Shown here piece after piece: positions 1 through 30,283 of a stretch of 30,283 nucleotides of DNA. Source of the DNA: Cyanophora paradoxa CCMP329 (lineage: Eukaryota; Plantae; Glaucophyta). The notes under the pieces were generated by a model, which saw only the letters and a list, made by a program, of their open reading frames with translations, was not told where the DNA came from and did no database searches. How positions within the stretch are numbered: position 1 is the stretch's first letter; each line of letters starts with the position of its first letter. The DNA lies in contig QPMI01000223.1 of the NCBI GenBank assembly GCA_004431415.1, positions 1 through 30,283 on the forward strand. Direction: 5' to 3'. A program made the position numbers and the translations under genes.

Positions 1-26
1 GGGGTGCAGCAGGTTGGGAGGCAGGT

Positions 27-3000
27 CTAGAGTATGAGGTGGTCTCCGGGCGAGCGGGCACTTTCCCGTCTGGCGTCGGAGTGGGCCTGGAGGGCAGCTG
101 CGGAGGCAAATCGGGTGCCACAGGTGCAAGAGAAGTCAGATGTCATGGCTACGGTGCCGCATTGGGCGGCTGGGGGGAGGGGGGCCTGGGGGAGGGGGCG
201 GTCTGGGGCGAGGGGGAGGCAGGGAGTCGTGCAATTGCCTGGCGGAAATTTTCCAGGAGAACCCATGGTTGGCTTTCCGAGTCCAATCCGCAGCAGAAGT
301 CAGTGATGGAGATGGTATCATGGAGGGAGGGGCGGGGGGGGGGGGGGGGGGGGGGGGACTAGGCGGCTGTACTGGCGGCGAGCGGGAGGGTTTGGTGTCG
401 GCATGTTTGCGGTATCGACGTTTGGTTCTGTCAGTGATGCCCTGTCGGAGCTCCCAGGCGTGGTTGCGGGCGCAGCGGTCCCTCCAGATCGCACGGAGGT
501 GTTGGTCGAGGAGTAGCGCTAAATCTTTTTGGATTGACATTGTGGTGGTCTTGTTGATGCCCAGGGCTGCGCAGAGGGCGGGCAATCCTGCCGGGGTACC
601 GAGGCGCAGGAGGGCAGGAGCGGGGAGGGGAGTATGTCAGCCAAGGCCGGGCTAAGCTTTGTCCATAGGGTATCGGTGAGACTGGGGGGCGGAAAAGGGC
701 CGGATTTTCGGTGGGGGAGAGGAGGGCGGATTGGAGGGGAGAGGCGGGGTCAGGGGAGACGAGGCGGAGGAAGGGAAAGAGTTGAAAAATAGTGTCGTCG
801 TGTCCTAAGGGTTTGGGCGAGTGGCGGAGAACCCGGGTGCGGAGGAAGGTCACGAGTGCGTCCTGGAGAGCTTGGAGGAGGAGGCGAGCGGCGGGGCAAG
901 TAAATATGTGAATGAAGTCTTCGGGGGGGTGGGTTGTAGGGTCGGGCTGTCTGGGGTCTGCGGCCCTCGGTGGGGAAGAGGGCGGGGGGGAGCCCGGGGG
1001 GGTGCACGTGGCAGGGGGCGGGGAGGGTGGGGGTGGGGAAGTAGGGTCCTCGGGGACTGGGGCAGGGGTGGGGGGGAGGTGACAGAAGGGGCAGTGGGCG
1101 ATACCGTCAGGAAAGAGAGGGCCGTATAGGTCGGGGTCGTGGAGGAGGCGGATGGTGAGGGAGGGGAGGCCTCCAAGAATGCACTGGAATCTTGACTTTG
1201 CGGAGGTGATCGCCTGTGGGGTACGGCGGTCCGGTGGCTTGTCGGACACGAGGGAGAGGGCTGGGGCGAGGGTAACGTGAGGATTGCTGAGGACGGCCCC
1301 CGCGTTGCGAAGCTGGCGCCAGTCGAGGTATTGGGAGAGGGAGGCTTCGGCTAGGAAGTGAGAGCGGGGGTCCCCCTCAACGCGGTATGCATGGAGTCTG
1401 CCTCTGTAGGGCTCGGCTCCTGGAACTGGGCCTTGGGATGACGGGGGCGGGAGGCCGACGCGGATGAGGAAGCATTTGAAACTGTGGGGAATGAAGAGAA
1501 GGGCTGAGAGGGGGGCGTCTGGGGCCGTTTTGGCAAGCTTGTCAACGGCGTCATTGTGGCAGTTGTCAGGAGTATAGGCTGGGTTCGGGATACGGTTCTT
1601 GGCCGGGGTCCGGGCCGCCTCTTTCTTTGCGGCCGTTTTAGATGTTTTGGCGGACCGTGGTGGCGGCTGGGCGGCGTCGCGGTGAGCGGCTTCAGCTAGG
1701 ATGGTCGCCGCCTCGAGTGGGGTCACGTGGGACGGCCGGAAGAGACGGCGTGCTGTTGCGGAAGCTTCGTTGCGGGCCAGGTCAGCGAGCTGAGAGGCGA
1801 GTTCTTGGGCGTAGCGAGCCCCGGGAGGGAGGGGGGTGGCGGGCCCTGCAGGGCGAGGCGGGGTAGACTCAAGCACAGTTGGGGAGCGCGGGAGGGCTGG
1901 GCGGTCGGGGGAGGGTGGTGGGGAGTCTATAGCGAGGGTAGGCAGGGTGCCGCCAGTGGAGACCGGGGGGCGGCGTGGCGGTCGGGGGCGCCCCGGGAAG
2001 GTCGGTGGGGGTCTGAGGGCCGGGAGGGCAGGGCCACAGCATATAGAGTCGAGGGTGACGGACCCGTAGCAGAGGCTGAGGGCAATATATTCACGGTATC
2101 TGCGGAGCGCAGCATTGTCGACCTGAATGTAGGCTGGGGGGCGGGGCAAGTCCGACGGGGCAAGTGCTGAGGAGCGACTGAGTAGGTCAGCTGTGAGGAG
2201 GAGGAGAGGGCCGCAGGCCGTGCTGTTGGGAGGCTGGAGAACGGAGAGAGATGTCTCCGGGCGTAGATAGGTCCATCTGCAGAATGGAGTGAGGGGGAGG
2301 GGAGAACCAGAGTCGCGTTGACTCCAAGTGGCCGCCAAGTCTTGTGCAAAGGAGACAAGGTGATCAGGGACGTCGAGGGAGCCGTTGTGAATGTAGAACG
2401 AGCGCGTCTGAGGAAATAAAGCAAGTAGGTGCCAGTGTCCCGGGAGGGTGCCGGGATCTGCTTGAGGGAAGGGTCGGCGAGGGGGCTGGTGGGGTATGAT
2501 GAGTGGGGCGATAGGTAAGGATGGGGACAAGGACAAGGCGGGCATCGAGAAGGCGTCCGGGGGGAAGGTATTGGTGCAGGGGGAGAAGGGCAGAGCCCCG
2601 AGAGTCAAATTGGGAGGCTGCACTAGCGGGGTAGGAGCTGGACGACAGGAAGTAGGCAGGGTGAGGCGAGGCCAGGGCGGCTTCACGGGAGGAGAGCATG
2701 TCAAGGAAGGCTTCCACGAGGGGGAGGCTGAGGGCGGCATTCGGCCGGAGGTGGATAAGGTCGCCTCGTCGAATGAGGGAGTGGCGATGAGGGTCAGGTC
2801 GGGGGGCGGGTGGGAGGGGGGGTTTCGACATGAGAGTTTGCTCCGCGCAGTAATCATTGTCTGCAAACCGGAAGGCATTCCCCAGCCAACTTTTCTCCGC
2901 CAGCGTCAGGGGGCGAGGGAGGGGAAATTCAGTCGGGTGAGCGGGGGTTCGGCCTGGGGAAGCAGTTGGTCGGGCCTCGGGCGCCGGGGGGCGTGGGGGT

Positions 3001-6000
3001 GGGGAAGGGCAGGGTGGGGGGGGGGTGGGGGGCTGCGGGGAGGAGGGAGGGGAATTGGGGGACCGGGGGGTTACCGGTGTAAGGGACGGGGGGGAGAGGG
3101 GAGGACGGAAGGGAGGAGGGGTGGGGTCTCGCTTGCGTCTGACCGGACGGCGGGCTTTGGCTGCCGTGTGCTGGGAAGGGCGGGAGCTGGTGCGCGGGGT
3201 CATGCGCTGTCGTTTTGTTGTGAATGCCGGGTCGTTGGCCTGGACTGTCCCCAGGAGAACCTCAGGGTCCCGGAGAAGGAGAGCGGCCGCCAACGCTCCC
3301 GGTAGATGGGGGCGTGGAAGGGGATGGGGCGGCCCCGTCCTTTGCCATACAGGTGGACTTCCTCACCGCGGCCAATGAACTCAGCAGCGGTCATGACGAA
3401 GAGAGCGTCTTCACCCGTGTGAACGTTTTTCCAGGCTTGTGTGGGGAAGGTGCTGGTGTCGTACTTCCAGGCCGAGCGTGGGGAGGAGTCGCCGGGGCGG
3501 AGAGTCGCCGTCCACCAGTTGATGACCCAGTCTTTAAGAGGGGCCGTGACGTCGGAGGCGGGTTTGCGGGTGACGTCCAGGATGCGGATTTCGCGGAGGC
3601 GGGCCGAGATGATTGCTAGTCGCCAGGGTCGGGACCCAGAGGGGGGCAGGGGGAGGAGAATATAATCGTATTCCGTAGGGGAGAAAGGGTGCGGGACGTA
3701 GGGTCGGTCCAGTTGTGGCTGGCCTGCGCGGGCTTTGAGAGAAAGGGCAGTGGGGGCTGTGCCCATGAGGATCGAGGTTGCGTGGGAGGACGAGAGGAAG
3801 AGGCACTTGGGGGTGGTCGGGGCATGCAGGCGGAAGGAGACTTGTCGGTTTTGGAGAAGTCTGAAGAAAGCGTCGACGGGTTCTGCAGGTATGGGTTGTG
3901 CGAGGAGAACGGGTGTGGCCAGGTGGGCCCCAGACCGAGGGTTGGGGTCGATGAGGGAGAGGGGGGCCGCTTTAAGGGCAGCCAGGCGGGATTTTATGCC
4001 GTCGAGGAGGGGAAGTACTCGGCGATCATACCTGGGGCCGTCAGGGTCGATGGCAGCTGAGTAGGGGATGGCTCGGCGTCCATAGCGTTCGAATAAAACA
4101 GGAAGGGCGCCGGTTTGGTTGCGGAGAGGGAACGTGGGTGGGGGGCCAGGCGGGGCGGGGGTGGGGTGGCAGTGCTGGCAGGACAGGGCGGGTCCCCGTG
4201 CCCATTGTTCTGCGATCAGGGAGGAAATAGGGATGCCCCACATGCCAGGGTCGCAACGGTGGTACGCGACCAGAGGGGTGCCAGCTTCGGTCTGGGAGGT
4301 GGGGGCGAGTGTAAGATCCTCGTCCCAGTACCAGGCGGGGAGAGGCGTGTCACGGTCGGCGGGGACAGCGGGTTTGCAGAGGGAAGTGGGGTAGAAATGC
4401 CAGGTGGGGCCGGAGCCCCTAGGATGGGCTAAGTAATAGTCGAGGGCGAGTTTCCTTGTAGGCCCGGGATCAGGGTAGTCAACATCAGGGGCGTCCTCGG
4501 GGAGTGGTTGAAGGAAGATTGGGTTGGGAGGGGAGCAGCACTGGAAGGAGATGTTGTGAGTGATGTCTCTGCGTCCTAAGGCTTCAAGGAAAGCGGAGTA
4601 GGCGCGGAGGATGTCGCAGTCCGAGACGATAGTCAGGTGTTCGTCGGAAGGAAAAAGAGTATGATCTTTGGGAAGTCGGATGCAGCGGTTCCAGATGACG
4701 GTGTCCTCCGCCGTGAAGGCGCGTTCAAGTCTGGCGGACGCGAGGGGGACGAGGTCAAGGACCAGGTGGGTGTTGGTAGTCTCGGAGGCATCTACATAGT
4801 CAACAAGGTCCGCTTGGCATCGGAGGAAATTGTAGTCGGTGGGGCTGTCAGCTAGAATATATGTGCGAATGTGCCGGCGAGGCGGGAAGAGGGACGAGAA
4901 TAGTGACGGGGGGAGGGGTGGAGAGGAGTCGTCCGAAAAAAGGAGTCGGGCATCGGGGATGTCCATTCCACCAATATAGTGGTAGGGAGCCGAGGCAGAG
5001 AACGTCTGCGGGGCGGTAGGTAGGGGGGCAGCTGGTCCGCTGAGGGGGACACGGGGTCGGCGGGGGGAAGAGGGGGCCGGGCGGCGGGTCGTCGTTGGTG
5101 TCGGAGCCGTTGCAGGTGGCCGCGGGATGGTCTTTGGTTGGTGAGAGGGGACCACTGAAGCGTGACTTGGAAGTTCGGGTCTTGGGCGATACGAATGGCG
5201 TATTGCGTTCGAGCGTTGAGGAGAAGGGCCCGTCTTCTCGGCGGAGCAGGGTGCGGAAGTTGATGGGATGGGAGAAAGATGAAGGGTCTTGAAAGGCGAA
5301 GGCTGTCAGGGCTCGGATAGTGTTCTGACTGTCCGTGATAATTTTCCCGCCGTGGGCCCGAAATACGTGAATGCTGCGGAGATTGTGCCTGCTAGCTCTC
5401 CCAGGTTCACGTTATGTTGGACGCCGGGAGGCGGTGGGCGAACTCGATTTTGTCAGGCAGGTCGGGATTATTTTCGAGGGGTGCAAGGCCGGCGTAAGTG
5501 GTTCGGACGGAGGCGGAGCCCTGTTTTTGTGTGCTGGCGTCCGTGTATATTACCCGGGGAGTAGGTCCGGAGGGAAGGGGCGGGGAGTTTAGTGCGCGGA
5601 GTGTAGGGCAGAGCTCTGCGAAAAGGGCTCGGGAGGTAATGAAAAGGAAGTCGAGCCCGGCCGGGGATTCATAGAAGTCGCGGTCGGCTTGTGATGCGGG
5701 GGTCATAAGGCGTGGGCGTCTCTTGAGGGCAACATTGGTAGCCTGGGCCTCCGCTCGGAAAGAGTCCCACCAGTCAGTTTCCCGGAGCCAGAGGTCGATG
5801 AAGCCAATGTGTGTGATTTCGCGGGGGAGGTTGGAAGGGGGGAGTTCGGGGTCATATTGAGCAGGAGGGGTAGCTGAGGAGGGGTCAAGGCGGGCTTTTT
5901 TAGCTGCGCGTGTGGGTTGAGCACGGGAGGGCTGCTGCCCTCTAGAGTGGGAGCATGTGAAGGCGGAGGTGGAGTCGGGCCGATTTCGTCTGCTGTCCCC

Positions 6001-6003
6001 TTC
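27..6003 (-). CDS. C-terminal part of LINE ORF2-like polyprotein (RNase H, unknown domain, two C48-like domains, CCHC knuckle, terminal C2H2-like finger), frameshifted in this assembly
   Basis: ORF pieces 5407-5706, 3200-5155, 2364-3293, 431-2878, 136-585 and 27-266 can be joined by single-base frameshifts. The last piece has CTCGTRFASAAALQAH...H and a TAG stop at 27-29. Confidence 0.65.
2060..2800 (-). other. Ulp1/SENP (peptidase C48)-like domain 2, predicted active
   Basis: IRRGDLIHLRPNAALSLPLVEAFL...AYFLSS...LVLVPI (frameshift) GHWHLLAL...FYIHN...LQPPNSTACGPLLLLTADLL...LRRYREYIA. His codon at 2435-2437 and Cys codon at 2213-2215; oxyanion Gln present; Asn at the usual Asp position. Confidence 0.75.
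3290..3900 (-). other. Ulp1/SENP (peptidase C48)-like domain 1, predicted inactive
   Basis: EPVDAFFRLL...KCLFLSS...YDYILLPL...RPWRLAII...IRILD...PTQAWKNVHTGEDALFVMTAAEFI...YRER aligns by eye to the SENP pattern EVINFY...ILLVPI...HWCLAVV...YYD...PQQxNGSDCGMF. The catalytic His and Cys are absent. Confidence 0.65.
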
Positions 6004-6479
6004 ATGAGTCTAGCTCGCGATCGAGCTCTTTTTCAGAGTCTAGAGTCTAGCTCGAGCTTTTTTCGTGTCTCTCAAGCTCCTCAGGCCTCAAGCTCCTCTT
6101 TGAAGTTCGCAATCCGTCGGACGTCTCTGTCTTTCTCGTCCGTCGCGCGTCTCTTCCGAAGATCTCGAGCTCCATGCATATGAGTTTTCGCTATTGGCTC
6201 TTCGTCTTGTTTTTTGCTCCTGTCGATTTCTTGCTTCACTTGTACGTGTTTTCAGCCCCCCTGCCACGGCCCTGGCGCGGATTCTGGCAGCGGAGCCTCG
6301 GATCCGGAAGCTCGAACTCTCATGCTCTGATCATATGAGCGATTGTCGGACACTTATCTTTCTTGATATCGCGGCGAGAATTCGAAGCTCTCCGGATCCG
6401 GATCGATATCGGGGGAGGGGCCGGGTGCACGTGGCCATGGCCATGGGGCATCGTGGGGCAGGGATCGAGTGTGTGTGTG

Positions 6480-6499
6480 GGGGTGGGGGGTGAGGGGGT

Positions 6500-6532
<33 letters not shown>

Positions 6533-6590
6533 CGGGCGGGGGGAGGGGAGGCGGAGGGGGGGGAGGGAGAGAGGGAGGGGGGCCGGGGAC
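6480..6590. repeat. Poly-G / G-rich low-complexity tract
   Basis: Run of about 30 G at ~6500-6532 plus GGGA/GGGGA units. Similar runs occur at ~334-357 (G) and ~13032-13064 (C). Confidence 0.9.
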
Positions 6591-6735
6591 GAGGAGCTCG
6601 GAGTTCAAACTTTGAAACAGCTGCAGCGTACGTTCACTGAACAATGAACACCTTATAGTACTATAGCTACTACTGGCCGATCGATAATAATGATTCGATA
6701 TCGCTGATATCGATGATCGATGTCACTATCTTTCA

Positions 6736-22398: not shown

Positions 22399-22681
22399 AC
22401 ACATAGTAAAATGCGGAGTTTTAACCCTCGGCTTATCATAATTGATTTTGTTGATATATCTCGTATATTCTATTTCAATCAATCGATAATCTGTGTATAT
22501 CTTATCGAATATTCAATTATTTCGATTATTTTGTATTCTTTTCGATATTTTATCGTAAATTTCTCTTATTTTCCGATTAGTCTTACTGAGTTAATCGATA
22601 ATCTGTATATATTTCCGAATAATATAACTGAATCTCAATTATATCTTGCCTCTGGTTAAAACTCCGCATTTTACTATGTGT
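22399..22681. repeat. Perfect 28-bp inverted repeat at the element terminus
   Basis: acacatagtaaaatgcggagttttaacc (22399-22426) is the exact reverse complement of ggttaaaactccgcattttactatgtgt (22654-22681). Confidence 0.97.
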
Positions 22682-22935
22682 GATTGGTCTAAAAGTTAAT
22701 TGATTTAATCGATATTATATTCATGTACTTTCTCGATTAAATTTAATTAAATTTAAATTCATTTAATCGGAAATATATCGCTTAACTCGATTAAGATCCA
22801 TATTAGATTCATTTGTTTATATTAACAAATCGATCTCTTATTGAATTCAATCGTAATTATACATGAAACTTATATGATTTTATCATTGTTTTGTTGAGTC
22901 TAAGGGGGGACCCTTAGGTTTTTTGAAATAATTGG

Positions 22936-23255
22936 GTGTCACAGGTGTCACAGGTCCATCCCAAACTTTTGAAAATTCATTCTTTATAGGAGAAACTTTG
23001 GGATAAACCTGTGACACCTGTGACACATACCATATTTAGTAAGGATCTCTTTTATAATGAAAAACTCAGTAATAATCTTATCTATGTATTTCTAATTAAA
23101 TGAATAAATGATTTAATCGAGTGTCACAGGTGTCACAGGTCCATCCCAAACTTTTGAAAATTCACTCTTTATAGGAGAAACTTTGGGATAAACCTGTGAC
23201 ACCTGTGACACATACCATATTCAGTAAGGACCTCTTATATTGTGAAAATCTCAGT
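22936..23255. repeat. Two direct ~135-bp copies (22936-23070 and 23121-23255), each containing a 91-bp stem-loop
   Basis: Arms gtgtcacaggtgtcacaggt and acctgtgacacctgtgacac form a perfect 20-bp inverted repeat, extended by atcccaaa/tttgggat. Period is 185 bp. Confidence 0.97.
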
Positions 23256-23645
23256 GTTAGTTGGTGTAGTTGATTCAAAAAATGCATTTTATACTCTGAT
23301 TCATTGTTATTTCCTGTGAAATTTGAGTCAACTCAACCCACTTAGTCAACCCTTGCATTGAATTCGTAACAAAATCCATATACTATTACTACTTTTACGA
23401 TTAATATGAGTCAACCTTGAGTCCACTTTAATATAAATATTATATAATAGGGGGAATCAAGGGGAGATGCTTATAAACATATGAATTATTGAGCCTATGA
23501 TACTTACATCGTCAGGCAGGCCTCGTTAAGAGGATTCCGAATCTGTTTTGGTTTTGTCACATGATGAGTTGGTGAAGAGATACATGCATTTTAGTGTTTT
23601 GTATGTGGTTTAATGATATGATGTCATAATGCATGGGTTTTCGTC

Positions 23646-23744
23646 AACAGTTAAATGAACAGTTAAGTGGACACCGTTTCACGATAAACGAGTAGACACT
23701 GCCTACTCCCAACAGGTGTCCACTTAACTGTTCACTTAATTGTT
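23646..23744. repeat. 30-bp inverted repeat (2 mismatches), with a further partial copy of the right arm at ~23833-23856
   Basis: aacagttaaatgaacagttaagtggacacc (23646-23675) versus ggtgtccacttaactgttcacttaattgtt (23715-23744). Confidence 0.92.
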
Positions 23745-24223
23745 CGCAATTTGCTTCATTGTCTTTCAATAGCTTTCCCGCATATCTTGTTTTCAATTGT
23801 TGTTGCAGTACACTATTACAATAGTTGTCTCGTTAACTGTTCACTTATCTGTTCGCTGCGGAAAAAAGACGATGACGGACGTGTTATGTTACGAAATGAT
23901 GTCATAATGACGATGCATATGTATATGATATATATGACACACCATCGAACTCGGGAGATCATGACGATCACGGCGATATATATATGTTATGTGTTTATGA
24001 TACATCATTATTACATCATTATGATGCATCATTCCGAAATCTCGAAAAATCGATAATCGGCATCTTCAAACGCTTGTATCTCATCACCAGATTATCAAAT
24101 CGCAACGTTCTGCATATCGCTGTGAAGCGCTTGAAAAGATCTACAAGACAATGTGTATATCATATGCATATATGTATATCAGTCATACATATATTTGGAA
24201 AAAACGAGTTTTCGCCTAGCAAA

Positions 24224-25607
24224 CTAGCTAGTTTTGGTCCTTTCTCTTAGTGTTCTTTGAGGTTTAGGGGCTGTATATGACTCCTTAGTAGTCTGAAAGT
24301 CATTATACCATCTCTGGCTATTCACTTCTGAAAGTTTCTGTGTTCCTGCTATAGTGAGCTTTTTGAGTTCCCTGTTAACTTTGCCAGCCTTCTCCTTTCT
24401 AGCCTCTATCAAAGGCTTATCTGGGACTTCATTAGAAGCTTCTATACCCTCTCTTCTTATAGCAGCATCAACCCTAGCTTCCTCTTTAGCTTGCTCTAAG
24501 GCATCCACTGTAGGGTTTCCAGATACTCAACTGCATTCACAGGCAACAGCTCATGGAAAGCAAACCTGTTATCTATGATCTCTCCAGTGGGACTCTTTAG
24601 CTTAAACTTAAAGCCTTCTCTACTATCAACAGTGTAAACCATCCTAGACCAATTGTTACCCTGTTTAGCAAAGGGATTCTTCTCCACTTTCACTCTAACA
24701 AACATGCCAGGCTGCATGGTATCAAGATAAGCTATTGATTTCTTGAATCTTTCATCTTCTAATCCTACTATATACCTATAATGCTCCTCTGTAGTTTCAC
24801 CTGGCTTCATCTTAGTAGCTGAGTGAACTGTATTATTGTAATTATACTCAATATCACCTAACACATCAAAGAATCTAGCTGTGTTATTAGCTATGCAATA
24901 GTTTGTGATCAGTCTCTTAATCTGCTTGTTAAAGGCTTCAATTCGACCTTGGCTTCTATGGTCAGCAGTTCCACTCACTTGGTGTTCTATGAATTTACTA
25001 GATAAATACTCCTGGAATATTCGATTTTGGAATTCACTCCCAGCATCTGATTGAACTTTTACTATGGGTCTTGCCACTCTCATTTCAAGCTGTTTAAATG
25101 CAGCTAATGTAGTGAGAGCTGATTTATCCCTTATAGGTATGATATACCCAGTTCTCAGTGTAGATTCCATTGCAGTCATAAAGGTATCATAGCCATTGTT
25201 TTGTTTCTTATAAGCTGGGAAAAAGAGCAAATCAATCACATAGGTATCAAGGGGTTGCCTAATTGGGACCATGGGATCTCTCTTCCTAGATATAGCAGGT
25301 GCATTGATCTGAACAACTTCTTGTTTTTTATAGAACTCTTGCAACTGCTTATAGGATTCATCAGGTAACTCAGCCCTCATAGCTTGAAGCCCTTTGTAAC
25401 CAGTTCTCACATCATAGAATCTCTTGGCAATCTTGCTGGTTTCTTTCACTGCAATAGCAACTGGGATCTCTACTGGGACAAGCTCTTTCATCTCTGACTT
25501 TTTACAATTCGAGATTCTCCCTTTTCCTCCTTGGGAACTGTGATAGGCAGTAGGTTACCTTGTAGTTGCTCAGTGGTTCTCCTTACTATTCTTCCAGTTG
25601 CTGGCAT
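24224..25607 (-). CDS. Polinton-type retroviral-like (rve, DDE) integrase; core ORF 24496-25491 extended at both ends by probable frameshifts
   Basis: YVIDLLF (D1), VQSDAGSEF (D2), SQGRIEAFNKQIK (E), YNNTVHSATKMKP, and an SH3-like GMFVRV...NWSRMVYTV segment. The upstream ATG at 25607 (MPATGRIV...) and the downstream ORF 24224-24508 join by single-base insertions at ~25500 and ~24517. Confidence 0.93.
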
Positions 25608-25610
25608 CTC

Positions 25611-28600
25611 TTAATTAAAAGGAACAGAATTAATACCATCTGGTAAGATGTATCTCTTTGCATCAAAGCAGTTTAGGGCAACCCTTCTACTCACAGTATC
25701 TATTATTGTGTGATCTGCCCTTCTTTTCTGCTTTGCAGTCACAGTCTTGCTGATACCTGCAAATAAACACTCCTTAAAATCATTGAATTGGAGTTCCTCA
25801 GTGGAAGTCCCAGATAGCTTACTTCTCTCAATCTCAGCAGTTCTGAAACTGTAAACTTTGGCTCTCAGACCTACATACTCCAATATAGCAGAACCTGGCA
25901 TCTCATTTTTGTATTTACCTGGGGTCATTCTGTTAGATCCCCCTAAGTCCAGATTAAAGGATATATTCTCTAGGTCTTTTTGGAGGGTCTGAGATTCGAT
26001 ATATAGACAAAAGGAATCAGTATCATGGAATAGTAACTTTGCTTTTGCCCACTGGGACCTTACAGTATCATAGAAGAACTTGTAGTTATGCAGTTTGGCA
26101 GTATCCAAAACATAAGCCCCAATAGCAACAGGCTTATCTAGCTTCACATGTTTTGTGTAAAACTCAAAGGCAACTGCCCTTTCACTTATGGGACTTGTTG
26201 ATTTCACTAAAGGAGAGGCTGCATATTTCATAAACAGTTTCTCACTGTTGGCAATCTTAACCACAGATCTACCTCTACATGATTCAATGCATTTCCCATA
26301 GATTGAGTTATTCATGAGTTTATAGAAATCAGCCTCGAATTTATTCACTGCTTTCCTTCTCATATCAGTGTTCAGCTCAATGTAGGGTTTCATTACAGGA
26401 GCCACAGTAAATGATAGGACCCTGTGAACCTTCTTTAGTTTCACACCTTTGGTCAGAATATACTGTAGAAGAGGCTCAGAAATCACATAGTTTGTCACAG
26501 AACCAAAGGTTGCAGTTAGCTTAGGGGTCTTATCAAGCTCTTCTCCTGAGAGATCCAATAGGCTCTTTTGATATTGTGATAATTCTGCATATTCTACTAT
26601 TTCTTGTTTATAATTAGGGGGAAATCACTGTGATCTAGAAACAGCCTAATTGGGTAATCCAGATCAACTTCCAGGAAACTGGATCTGTTATCTTGTGGGT
26701 TGAATTCGGTCTCCCATCTAAAATCACCAACTGGAATAGGCTGACTCAAGCAGTAGCCATACAAGTTGTTAGCATCAAACAGCATAATATGGGAGTTCTC
26801 ACCATCAGCCTCAGCATACCTACAAGGCATTGTTGCAAAGCCACCCCTGATTCCCCTCTCAACAAATTCGTATTGCTCTACATCACTTATAAGCTCTATT
26901 TTTGCCTTGGTGGTCCTAAGCATAGCATCCCAAGATAACCCAGGTGCAGATACATAATGAACTGGGTCCAATCCATATACTGAGTGTGAAAGCCTTCTGA
27001 AGGCTTGGAATTTGTCCATTAAGTCATCTACATCAGCAGCCCCAAAGTCCATAAAATTACTTGCATCAATGAACTTGTAAAGACCCCATTGCAATGAAAG
27101 GTATTGATCAAAGTTTTTCGAAAGGATTTCGATTCGCTTTTTATCACCCATGCCTGCTATTTTTCTGAAAATGAATGTCCCACATTCATCCATTTGGTCA
27201 ACAACAACTGCAACTTTGGTTTGCTTTGAGATTCTCCTATGTAGATTACAGTTTCTGCATGCAGGAGCAATATAATTGCCTGTGTGATGATCATGATCCC
27301 TGCATTTGAAGTTTTCCTTAGTGAACCTCTCACTGCAAAGGTAACAGTGTTTAGTAGCCTTGTAAATTGCTTTCTGCTCATCTGTGAGTTCATTCATGGG
27401 AATATTGGTAAACAGGAAATCGATTAGTTCTCTTGCTTTGGACTCCAAGCATTCAAACAGACCTCCCATTGGATCCTGCCCCTCAAATCGAAAATCTTGA
27501 ACATCTGCCCCAGTGACTATTCTTATGTTGACTGCTGAGACTTCTCTCTTGGATTTTGATGCATCAATGGGGATGCTTCTATGTTCAATCTTGCAGTATA
27601 CCACAACAGGAAGCCACACAGTTTTCCTGAGGTTTTCAGTCCAAACTCTATGGTGGTCTCAGGCTTAGGAGTGATTCCCTTTGAGAGTCTCCAATCAATG
27701 CATCTGTTTGAGTCCACATGAGCAGTGAGTTTAGCCTCAGACCTGAATCGAGATAAGCATGTGTCACAGTAGTGTAACTTTTGATCCTTGGTTTTATCAA
27801 GGGCAACTCTGAGAAGTCTTGAAAGGGACATGATTGTAATATAGTGACCATTCCCTTCATCATCATGAATGAGCATGAGATTAATCTTTTGCTTTCTGCC
27901 TGGGTTGCTGGATTGATGTAGGGGATATATAACATCTCGATCCATTCCAAATATGTTTATGCTGATGCCTGCATTTTGAGATTCGAATTTATCAATGATT
28001 TCAGCATCACAGGGAACAGGAATGGGATGTTATCGAAATTGAGAGCCAGAGGATGTATGTAGTTGTGAGTATTTCCATTTGCGATATTGTGTTAGCTCAC
28101 TTCTCTTGTGGGAATTCACATCTTTCCTATGGATCCATGCCAAAACTGCATTTTCGAAGCAAGAATCATCAATATTTCGAATATTCACTGTGGCTCTCTT
28201 GGCTGCAATTGAATCAGGTGTTTTAACATAGCAACCACCAGTTGGGCATAACTCATAATAGCAACTCTGAGCATTTCGATTCTCTCCAATCGATAGCTAT
28301 CAACAACATTCATCTGCTCCTGACACATTTGGGCTGCTTTATTCAGCTCAGTTCGAATATTTCTCGATTTGGTTAATACAAAATAATCGCTGTAAATGTA
28401 TTTCGATATCCAAACCTGTGGATTGCTGACTTTTACGAACTTGCAGATAAACGATAAGCGAACTTTGATTGCCCTGAATTGATCTAGACTGTCTCTTAAA
28501 CGTTTTGGTAGAGAGGTTGCAATTCTATCTAAATATTCAATCACATCAACAACAACTTCCCTTCTGGCTCTGTAAGTGAGCCAGCGATATAATTCATTCA

Positions 28601-28850
28601 TTGCTGTACCATCTTCTGCCTCTGGTTCTATTTGCCTCAGGCGATCGAGTTCATCAAGAGTTTCAACTTTATCATAGAGGTTATTGGCTTTTCTGGTTAA
28701 TTTCGCTAAAGTGGGTCTGCCCCTTGAAATAAATCCGATTTCCCGGTCATATTCAGCCTCTGTAATTTCATGGGCTGCATACAGTGTTCCCAGTAATCCC
28801 ATGAGTTCCCATTTCTTCTCTCTAATGAGTCTGTTGCTAATTCGGGGCAT
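25611..28850 (-). CDS. Protein-primed family B DNA polymerase (pPolB), ~1,080 aa after correcting about five frameshifts
   Basis: Motif A LFDANNLYG, motif B KLMNNSIYGK, motif C FHDTDS; also YGLDPVHYVSAPGLSWDAML, GIRGG, GLRAKVYS and DAKRYI. The N-terminal part has NIRNIDDSCF...LNFDNIPFPV...FESQN...GHY (vOTU-like), a CDTC...H...C finger and the EndoVII-like CYLC...RDHDHHTG...CRNCN. Confidence 0.95.
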
Positions 28851-28920
28851 AGTTCCTAACTTGTTCCTACTAAAAGGGGAGGTTTGAAATGGGGATATTC
28901 CGAACGCAAAAATTTGATGA

Positions 28921-28960
28921 AAACTACTTAAAGAAATATCTTCTATATATATAAAAGGAC
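28921..28960 (+). promoter_or_regulatory. Putative element promoter motif, copy 1
   Basis: aaactacttaaagaaatatcttctatatatataaaaggac lies immediately before the ATG at 28962; 38/40 identical to 30231-30270. Confidence 0.7.
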
Positions 28961-28961
28961 A

Positions 28962-29787
28962 ATGGCAGAGAACAAAGCAACATCTTCTCTGGAACGCTTG
29001 AAGGCTACATTAATGTTTCTTTGTGGATCTAATAACTTTAAAGACTTTGTCGCTTTGGGGAGAAGCAAATATATGAACTCTTTGTATTTGAAACTTGCAA
29101 AGTATGATTTGACTCACGAAAGCCTTCCTCCACACTCAAACAGCTGTGCTTGCAAGCATCATATTGAAGAACAATGCTACATCTTGCATGTGGATAAAAA
29201 GATTGTGGTTCTTGTTGGCAACTGCTGCATTAAACGATTTATGCCAAATGGTGCAAGGAGGGAAGATATATGCAAGAAATGCGGAGATCGACATAAAAAC
29301 CGTAAGGATAATTTCTGCAATAATGCAGGATTATCATAAAGGAGGAGGAATTGGAAAGAAAAAAGCAAATCCAGAAAGAAGCAGAGGAGCGAAAGAAACA
29401 ACTTGAATTAGAAGAAAGAGAGCGAAGGCAGAGAGAATTAGAACAAGAAAGAGCAAGGAATAGACATGCAGTTAATCTTTTCCTGATTGGTGCAACCAGT
29501 TCATTCCAAAAATGGATAATCTTCGCAGAGATGATATAGAGAGGTTCAGAGAGGGTAGATCTGCATTGATTGAAATGTACGCAGAACTCAGTACAACAAA
29601 CACATTGGTTGCTGGTTTCAGGTGCCTTTTCTTAAAAAAGATATCGCAAAAGGATAGATTGCAGATGGAATAAGGACAAGAAAACATGGGAGACCTTGGA
29701 AATCGAACCATTTGTAGCATTGCTAGTAAGCATTTCAAACTTATGTATATTGAGAGATTTGGACAGAGAGTTAAAGAACAAAAATGA
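28962..29787 (+). CDS. Cys/His-rich zinc-binding, coiled-coil and DUF5710-like protein (frameshifted in this assembly)
   Basis: CACKHHIEEQCYI...VGNCCIKRF...CKKC...FCN(K)C, then an E/R/K coiled coil, then WFQVPFLKKDIA(K)RIDCRWNKDKKTW, resembling the DUF5710 pattern VPFxEKDxAKxxGxRWDxxKKxW. TGA at 29785-29787. Confidence 0.65.
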
Positions 29788-29788
29788 T

Positions 29789-29812
29789 TTAAAGAATTCT
29801 CTATATATATTA
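29789..29812 (+). promoter_or_regulatory. Putative element promoter motif, copy 2 (shorter)
   Basis: ttaaagaattctctatatatatta lies upstream of the ATG at 29829. Confidence 0.5.
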
Positions 29813-29828
29813 AGAGAGACAGAGGAAA

Positions 29829-30128
29829 ATGCCACTCAGTGAAGCCCAGAAGAGAGCTATGAAGAGTACCAGCAAACTGAAAAAGGTAAGGCTCAAATCA
29901 AAAAGTTTAACGAAAAAATAGCCAACGCTAAGAGATCTATATCAAACCGATGATACCTATAGAGCCATGAAAATAGCAAGTTCATGTCAGCGAAAGTATG
30001 CAGCCAATGCAGTCTGCTTTGTCAAATATTTGTATGATGTCCCTTACTCAAACAGAGGGAGAAATCGAAACATGTCTAAATTATTTTCCCAGCATATTAC
30101 TAGGCTGGGATATGCTGTTTATTGCTGA
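29829..30128 (+). CDS. Small basic hypothetical protein (frameshifted; end uncertain)
   Basis: MPLSEAQKRAMK(K)YQQTEKGKAQIKKFNEK... follows the promoter motif and needs about two frame corrections. Confidence 0.4.
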
Positions 30129-30230
30129 ATACAATTCATCCTTTTTGTACTGAACCACTCGATATATCATGTGGATAAATTTCGTAGGGATACTTTCTCG
30201 ATTTCCAACAAAAAATGATTGGGGGACCCA

Positions 30231-30270
30231 AAACTACTTAAAGAAAAATCTTCTATATATATAAAGGGAC
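30231..30270 (+). promoter_or_regulatory. Putative element promoter motif, copy 3
   Basis: aaactacttaaagaaaaatcttctatatatataaagggac; near-identical to copy 1 and flanked by an imperfect inverted repeat (gattgggggaccc / gggaccccaatc). Confidence 0.65.
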
Positions 30271-30283
30271 CCCAATCGCTGAA

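Follow-up and report, generated by a model that had tools for sequence, protein, structure and literature searches.

A ribonuclease H (RNase H) domain has been listed for several clades of long interspersed nuclear elements (LINEs), namely the I group, Tad1, Ingi, L1 of plants, Proto1 and also Dualen/RandI (PMC4640811). A protease related to Ulp1 is found in NeSL and in Utopia-1_TSP, where it forms a separate N-terminal domain of elements of the restriction-like endonuclease (RLE) type (PMC4640811). The Dualen LINEs of Chlamydomonas encode an apurinic/apyrimidinic endonuclease (APE), a reverse transcriptase (RT), an RNase H, an RLE and a Josephin-related cysteine protease, and the RNase H is given there as one domain, with no mention of a split (PMC9977147). 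Here we analyze a contig of the glaucophyte Cyanophora paradoxa CCMP329 (assembly GCA_004431415.1, contig QPMI01000223.1), the whole stretch of 30,283 nucleotides being termed the window. Positions 139–6009 on its minus strand are a 5′-truncated copy of a multi-copy APE-type LINE, a non-LTR retrotransposon, of C. paradoxa. Within this family the RNase H is very probably divided, in frame, by a large cassette that carries a putative C48-type cysteine protease.

RNase H has a compact fold of ~150 amino acids. In the window copy the three acidic motifs YTDAS (5533–5547), NLGEL (5393–5407) and ITDSQ (5325–5339) are followed by the histidine motif W(V)PSH (5141–5154), and the motif of the last helix, HNDAVDKLAK, lies at exactly 1529–1558. 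These motifs had been picked out in an initial annotation made from the sequence, and all were found again at the same places on the minus strand. The D-E-D-H-D residues of the active site are present in YTDAS, GEL, TDSQ, WVPSH and NDAVDKLAK, and align with D10, E48, D70, H124 and D134 of the E. coli enzyme. The spacing from the histidine to the last aspartate is ~1,190 amino acids, compared with ~10 in type 1 RNase H.

As assembled, the N-terminal part of the RNase H contains four −1 frameshifts, at ~5425, 5349, 5228 and 5151, with further shifts at 3289 and 2443 in the rest of the open reading frame (ORF). We compared 431–5706 with short-read contigs from four public runs of C. paradoxa, two of DNA and two guessed to be RNA. 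Relative to the window, the contigs have one extra base each at 5425, 5349, 5228, 5151 and 3289, eight extra bases at 2443, six fewer at 1929, compensating changes of +1 and −1 at 1217 and 1192, and one extra base each at 681 and 625. There are thus 11 indels within 5.3 kb, nine of which involve a single base, and the missing bases are supplied exactly at the sites of the frameshifts. With all 11 applied by script, 6009–139 becomes a single open frame of 1,960 codons without a stop, compared with 27 and 54 stops in the other two frames. We therefore read the family as having one ORF, and the initial annotation had proposed just such a correction. About half of the contig depth at 5228 and 5151 matches the version in the window, and so some copies of the family may really carry these two shifts. 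Gene models built on the assembly of the window will be frameshifted.

A full-length relative was found by phmmer with the 815-amino-acid ORF of the window, searched against 1.84 billion representative proteins (E = 5e-104). This protein, P0002, is a single ORF of 3,720 amino acids on an 11.9-kb ENA metagenome contig (L001; ERZ27275054 k141_121716). Pfam matches Exo_endo_phos, the APE domain, at 13–292 (E = 8e-8, 32.7 bits) and RVT_1 at 733–1037 (E = 6e-18, 65.7 bits), both above cut-off; having an APE endonuclease and an RT in one ORF, P0002 is an APE-type LINE. The order of its parts is APE, RT, the N-terminal part of the RNase H, an insert of ~1,166 amino acids, the last helix and a CCHC tail. 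The corrected window protein is colinear with P0002 1497–3338, at 38% identity over 1,950 columns (E = 0). In P0002 the RNase H motifs LWHDAS, GEV, VLDSK and LEWVASH lie at 1618–1757, and the last-helix segment NLYNDQVDKLAK lies at 2926–2937, followed by the CCHC-type tail. The active-site counterparts are HDAS, GEV, LDSK, WVASH and NDQVDKLAK, with D, E, D, H and D identical in the two proteins. Both junctions of the insert are among the best-kept stretches of the alignment, reading WV.SHQPKTIP and PNPAYT..N..ND.VDKLAK. The earlier description of an RNase H broken at its His loop by an in-frame insert of ~1,200 amino acids, with all four acidic residues retained, is therefore borne out in both proteins. 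The measured length in the window copy is ~1,190 amino acids, between WVPSH and N-D-x-V-D-K-L-A-K, and the histidine is kept as well. The features of the window copy are listed below, with identities to P0002.

5578–5934, minus strand: linker between RT and RNase H, in which homology to P0002 starts (P0002 residues ~1497–1617); tblastn/blastp and alignment with P0002.
5141–5577, minus strand: N-terminal part of the RNase H, strand 1 to strand 5, with D, E, D and H and four 1-nt gaps; motifs, hidden Markov model (HMM) and hhalign, 40% identity.
4979–5140, minus strand: proline-rich linker 1, opening with the conserved QPKTIP; 54% identity, proline fraction 0.30.
3914–4978, minus strand: N-domain of the insert, with motifs AWYWDEDLT, H-x-C, C-x2-C-H and GPRY-RR-LPL; 35% identity.
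3240–3913, minus strand: D1, a possible C48-like pseudo-protease, with a 1-nt gap at 3289; 46% identity.
2790–3239, minus strand: proline-rich linker 2; proline fraction 0.30, 27% identity.
2018–2789, minus strand: D2, predicted C48 domain, with an 8-nt gap at 2443; PDB profile and Pfam on the P0002 homologue, 33% identity.
1589–2017, minus strand: proline-rich linker 3 with [ST]GGT[LI], then a basic alanine-rich stretch; alignment with P0002.
1517–1588, minus strand: predicted alpha-E, the distal helix of the RNase H, which holds the fourth of the acidic residues, PNPAYT..N.HNDAVDKLAK; 62% identity, rank 1 in the segment scan.
139–1516, minus strand: C-terminal region with a CCHC-type motif (HCPFCH 1079–1096 ... 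HIFTC 896–910) and a tail to the stop at ~139, with indels at 1217, 1192, 681 and 625; 49% identity, and no Pfam or PDB match.

The domains of the insert are as well conserved as the N-terminal part of the RNase H (33–46% compared with 40%). Truncation at the 5′ end is a common state of LINE copies. The homology of the window to P0002 starts within 5578–5934, which is the truncation point; we call the copy 5′-truncated because no APE or RT was found in the window upstream of 5934 in tblastn and blastp comparisons with P0002. The initial annotation had spoken of a retrotransposon RNase H. That holds for the family, which is a LINE with split RNase H motifs, while the copy in the window is itself without an RT. 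At the other end the ORF stops at ~139, and the 3′ end of the element runs past the start of the window. The 651-amino-acid ORF of the window has one relative in its protein search, a 97%-identical EukProt gene model of C. paradoxa (P0001), an outcome that concerns this ORF; a homologous-protein search with the 815-amino-acid ORF gave no match, and the corresponding search with the P0002 region matched only itself. A second database fragment from C. paradoxa is P0003. In the window copy Pfam matched no ORF or piece, even at E 10, and Rfam matched nothing in the window.

Whether the distal motif belongs to the same RNase H was examined by profile methods. An RNase HI HMM was made from 13 aligned sequences, E. 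coli rnhA and 12 diverse phage genes. The N-terminal part alone scores 3.8 bits in the window copy and gives no reported match in P0002; appending the 24-amino-acid distal segment brings the scores to 16.7 bits for the window copy and 9.7 bits for P0002. When every 24-amino-acid segment of the protein was appended in turn to the N-terminal part, the distal helix came out on top among the 1,767 segments of the window protein, as did its homologue among the 3,534 of P0002. A two-sequence profile compared with RNase HI by hhalign gave a probability of 1.9% for the N-terminal part alone; with the insert removed in silico this rose to 92.5% (E = 4.7e-7), the match reaching from helix A as far as helix E and the junction falling exactly at the His loop. 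In 150 control splices that used other conserved segments the score did not exceed 29.2 (mean 21.4, standard deviation 3.2) nor the probability 34%, compared with a score of 46.0 for the real splice (z ~7.6). Judged by sequence profiles, the distal motif would supply the alpha-E that the N-terminal part of this RNase H lacks.

The insert comprises three modules, the N-domain, D1 and D2, separated by proline-rich linkers with a proline fraction of 0.30–0.38, much as the initial annotation had described. A three-row profile of D2 compared with the PDB matched only SENP2 and SENP8, SENP2 being the best (E = 4.7e-4); the match spans the catalytic domain from end to end, and the His, Gln and Cys fall in register. 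In P0002, D2 (~2490–2760) contains GHW, YDG, QQ and CG, the full His-Asp-Gln-Cys set in the order of the C48 family, and Pfam Peptidase_C48 (PF02902) scores 17.8 bits there (E = 0.0031), under the cut-off of 20.7. In the window copy the His lies in GHWHL (2426–2440) and the Cys in TACGP (2207–2221). A PDB sequence search with D2 alone gave no relevant match. Taken on its profile and motifs, D2 is a cysteine protease domain of the C48 (Ulp1/SENP) type. Compared with D2 by hhalign, D1 shows a weak in-register likeness (P = 0.008, probability 5%). Other residues stand at its catalytic His and Cys positions in the window copy and in P0002 alike, and it has no PDB or Pfam match; it would be at best a degenerate C48-like pseudo-protease. 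The tandem SUMO-protease-like domains proposed earlier are thus upheld for the second (2018–2789), which matches C48/SENP, and not for the first (3240–3913), which has no database match. The N-domain, of 355 amino acids, has a conserved H-x-C (4253–4264) ... C-x2-C-H (4166–4180) that may form a zinc site; neither Pfam nor ESM Atlas, where recognition was low, placed the domain in a family.

Differences between copies of the family were used to examine selection. Among the 40 substitutions listed of 268, 25 are synonymous and 15 nonsynonymous, compared with an expectation of 29% synonymous, and 26 lie at third codon positions. Within the insert the corresponding counts are 20 and 12. We take this bias toward synonymous change inside the insert to mean that purifying selection acted on it during amplification of the family.

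We propose that the family encodes an ORF with APE, RT, RNase H and CCHC tail, in which a cassette of ~1,170–1,190 amino acids is placed in the His loop of the RNase H, between strand 5 with its histidine (WVPSH) and the last helix (N-D-x-V-D-K-L-A-K). Long flexible linkers would let strand 5 meet the distal helix, so that the RNase H could fold and work with the cassette hanging from the loop. Conservation of the five residues of the catalytic site and of the two junctions accords with folding of this kind. The protease would process the polyprotein, or strip SUMO-like modifiers from proteins of the element or of the host; the initial annotation had likewise put forward, as putative roles, a counter to SUMO-dependent silencing or self-cleavage. 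As judged from sequence comparison, we hold the split architecture itself to be very probable. Such comparison shows that the split is genuine, keeps the reading frame, persists between lineages at 38% identity, is subject to purifying selection and does not stem from a nested transposon; all of this taken together with a working RNase H we consider likely.

Several observations weigh against this proposal. The N-terminal part of the RNase H alone is not recognized by Pfam, by PDB sequence search or by hhalign, and therefore the RNase H assignment rests on the motifs together with the spliced profile match. Structure prediction lends no support, since AlphaFold2 (AF2) gave a predicted local distance difference test (pLDDT) score of 36.6 for the N-terminal part of the RNase H and 36.4 for D2. 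Window D2 has Asn (IHNGS, 2378–2392) where the C48 triad has Asp. The frameshifts of the window reflect either long-read errors left uncorrected or decay private to this copy. The selection test is based on the 40 listed of 268 substitutions, and only two independent lineages with the split layout are known. No further lineage was found in scans of JGI metagenomes with conserved peptide patterns, in which no candidate was confirmed, or in protein searches. Among ESM Atlas look-alikes of the N-terminal part recognition was low. A two-chain prediction of the N-terminal part with the distal helix scored 0.00, and is counted neither way.

The alternative that survives best is a dead, relic RNase H whose fold was destroyed by the cassette, with the distal helix kept because it now serves the CCHC domain at the C terminus. 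Transposition of LINEs is possible without an RNase H of their own, many LINE clades lack one, and both the great divergence of the N-terminal part, without a Pfam or PDB match when taken alone, and the lack of a usable fold prediction (pLDDT 36.6) are what a relic would give. A relic would not be expected to keep D, E, D, H and D identical in two lineages at ~40% identity in the domain, nor to show differences between copies biased to synonymous sites. Moreover, the distal helix scores specifically as the alpha-E of an RNase H, in register with the N-terminal part, in the profile comparisons above. We regard a dead RNase H as unlikely, if still deserving of serious consideration.

A different role for the cassette is suggested by a short conserved motif. 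The sequence [ST]GGT[LI] (window 1943–1960; P0002 2789–2794) lies ~20 amino acids past D2, in a proline-rich linker that is otherwise poorly conserved. It contains one of only two Gly-Gly pairs common to both lineages, and the only one outside the RNase H, and it is a candidate cleavage site for the protease. This conserved Gly-Gly-Thr just past D2 stands beside the proposal of polyprotein processing or SUMO removal made above. The cassette might go further and act as a regulatory module, the C48 protease cutting the polyprotein at this site. The cut would separate the N-terminal part of the RNase H from its last helix, or would free the cassette so that the two halves could assemble. In that case autoproteolysis, or the cell's SUMO state, would turn RNase H activity on or off as target-primed reverse transcription proceeds. 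We consider regulation of this kind improbable.

Less probable again is a cassette that is a nested mobile element, an intron or an intein, removed at the level of DNA, RNA or protein to restore a contiguous RNase H. Its size of 3.6 kb and its sharp boundaries do look like those of an insertion, and in the window the C-side junction has Asn-Cys, as at the end of an intein. Neither target-site duplications nor terminal inverted repeats were found at the boundaries 5140 and 1560, where there are only G-rich low-complexity repeat families. In the corrected reading the insert keeps the frame and is open from end to end; it is under purifying selection, and it occupies the same site in the 38%-identical P0002. 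Both junctions are bridged by short-read contigs from several runs, and all contigs that span the junctions carry the insert. No read joins ~5140 to ~1560 in any of the four runs; the sole read joints, which link 1033/1038 with 3012, fall within low-complexity G-rich repeats and come from a DNA run only. The initial annotation had named terminal duplications or repeats of its own, and absence from most copies, as signs of a nested transposon. Instead, there are none at 5140 or 1560, and the insert is present in other Cyanophora copies and in P0002. A nested transposon was rejected on these grounds. An intein was rejected also: there is no Hint motif or Pfam match, the N-side junction, where an intein would have a nucleophile, reads H|QPKTIP, and the +1 Cys is Leu in P0002. 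Removal of the insert by any of these routes is very improbable.

An artefact, in which chance motifs fell in a proline- and C-rich frameshifted pseudo-ORF or the contig was misassembled, is hardly credible: the 11 indels, the ease with which long ORFs arise in this base composition and the failure of Pfam on the window pieces would suit it, and against it are the same order of parts in several short-read runs and in an independently assembled metagenome contig, the rejection of chance by the segment scan and control splices, and the absence of in-frame stops compared with 27 and 54 out of frame.

Window positions 1–6000 contain, on the minus strand, a coding region rich in C and in proline, and a GC skew of +0.4 on the plus strand stops near 6000–6600. 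The coding strand of the P0002 contig has 4311 C and 2704 G, the same bias of C over G as the Cyanophora copy. A G-run of ~100 nt (6479–6582; a C-run on the strand of the element) is located upstream of the truncated 5′ end by a few hundred bases, and similar G-rich low-complexity tracts also occur within the LINE copy. In two runs whose type is guessed to be RNA (X15 and X17), contigs of 1.3–2.3 kb cover all of 431–5706 at 95–99% identity; if these really are RNA, the element family is transcribed. Farther along the window, 22400–30283 is an AT-rich block with a GC content of 0.35–0.46, compared with 0.57–0.67 elsewhere. Its minus-strand ORFs have weak Pfam matches to an integrase core (24496–25491), to protein-primed DNA polymerase B (25611–26558 and 26597–27619) and to endonuclease VII (26597–27619), and the block looks like a Polinton/Maverick-like element.

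The RT of P0002 has R2 proteins as its best solved relatives (E = 1.8e-10), and L1 ORF2p is absent from the matches; the RT is thus nearer to R2 than to L1 despite the N-terminal APE. No RLE was found after the CCHC motif by Pfam or by profile comparison with the PDB, which includes R2 structures. Membership of Dualen/RandI was considered, and was rejected: an APE is present with no RLE match, and because no RLE was found the family is not Dualen by the defining feature of that clade. The layout is a new domain architecture made from known kinds of part, namely a LINE, an RNase H and a C48 protease. In the literature searched, the coverage of which is incomplete and does not prove novelty, no previous account of LINEs with a split RNase H or an embedded protease came to light.

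If the proposal is correct, a conserved and selected insertion of ~1,190 amino acids in the His loop would represent domain insertion in an extreme natural form, and would mark this loop as a permissive site for engineering fusions of RNase H or RT. Transposon annotation based on Pfam misses both halves of this RNase H. The family places a SUMO-type protease in a glaucophyte LINE and adds to the scattered cases of NeSL, Utopia and Dualen. Together these suggest that retrotransposons have repeatedly recruited proteases of ubiquitin-like modifiers, for processing or against control by the host.

The closest comparisons can now be drawn. The D2 profile can be aligned with cellular SENP2, SENP8 and Ulp1 along the full length of the catalytic domain, and its His, Asp (in P0002), Gln and Cys are in register. 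D2 differs from these enzymes in lying within a transposon polyprotein, in its Pfam score below the cut-off, and in having Asn for Asp in the Cyanophora copy. NeSL and Utopia-1_TSP share with the present family a C48/Ulp1-like cysteine protease within the ORF of a non-LTR element; here, unlike there, the element is of the APE type and the protease is placed in the loop of its RNase H, preceded by an N-domain and a possible dead copy of itself. Dualen is likewise an algal LINE that combines an APE, an RT and an RNase H with a cysteine protease of the kind that acts on ubiquitin-like modifiers, and its RT too has affinities to elements of the RLE type. The protease in Dualen is Josephin-related, whereas it is C48 here, where no RLE was found. 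Finally, the non-LTR elements that carry an RNase H (PMC4640811) have, as here, the order APE, RT, RNase H and Cys/His motif in one long ORF, the D-E-D-H-D motifs, and 5′-truncated copies. The family described here departs from them in an RT (that of P0002) closest to R2 proteins and not to L1 ORF2p, in a giant ORF of 3,720 amino acids (P0002), and in the ~1,170–1,190 amino acids that lie between the histidine and the last helix of its RNase H.

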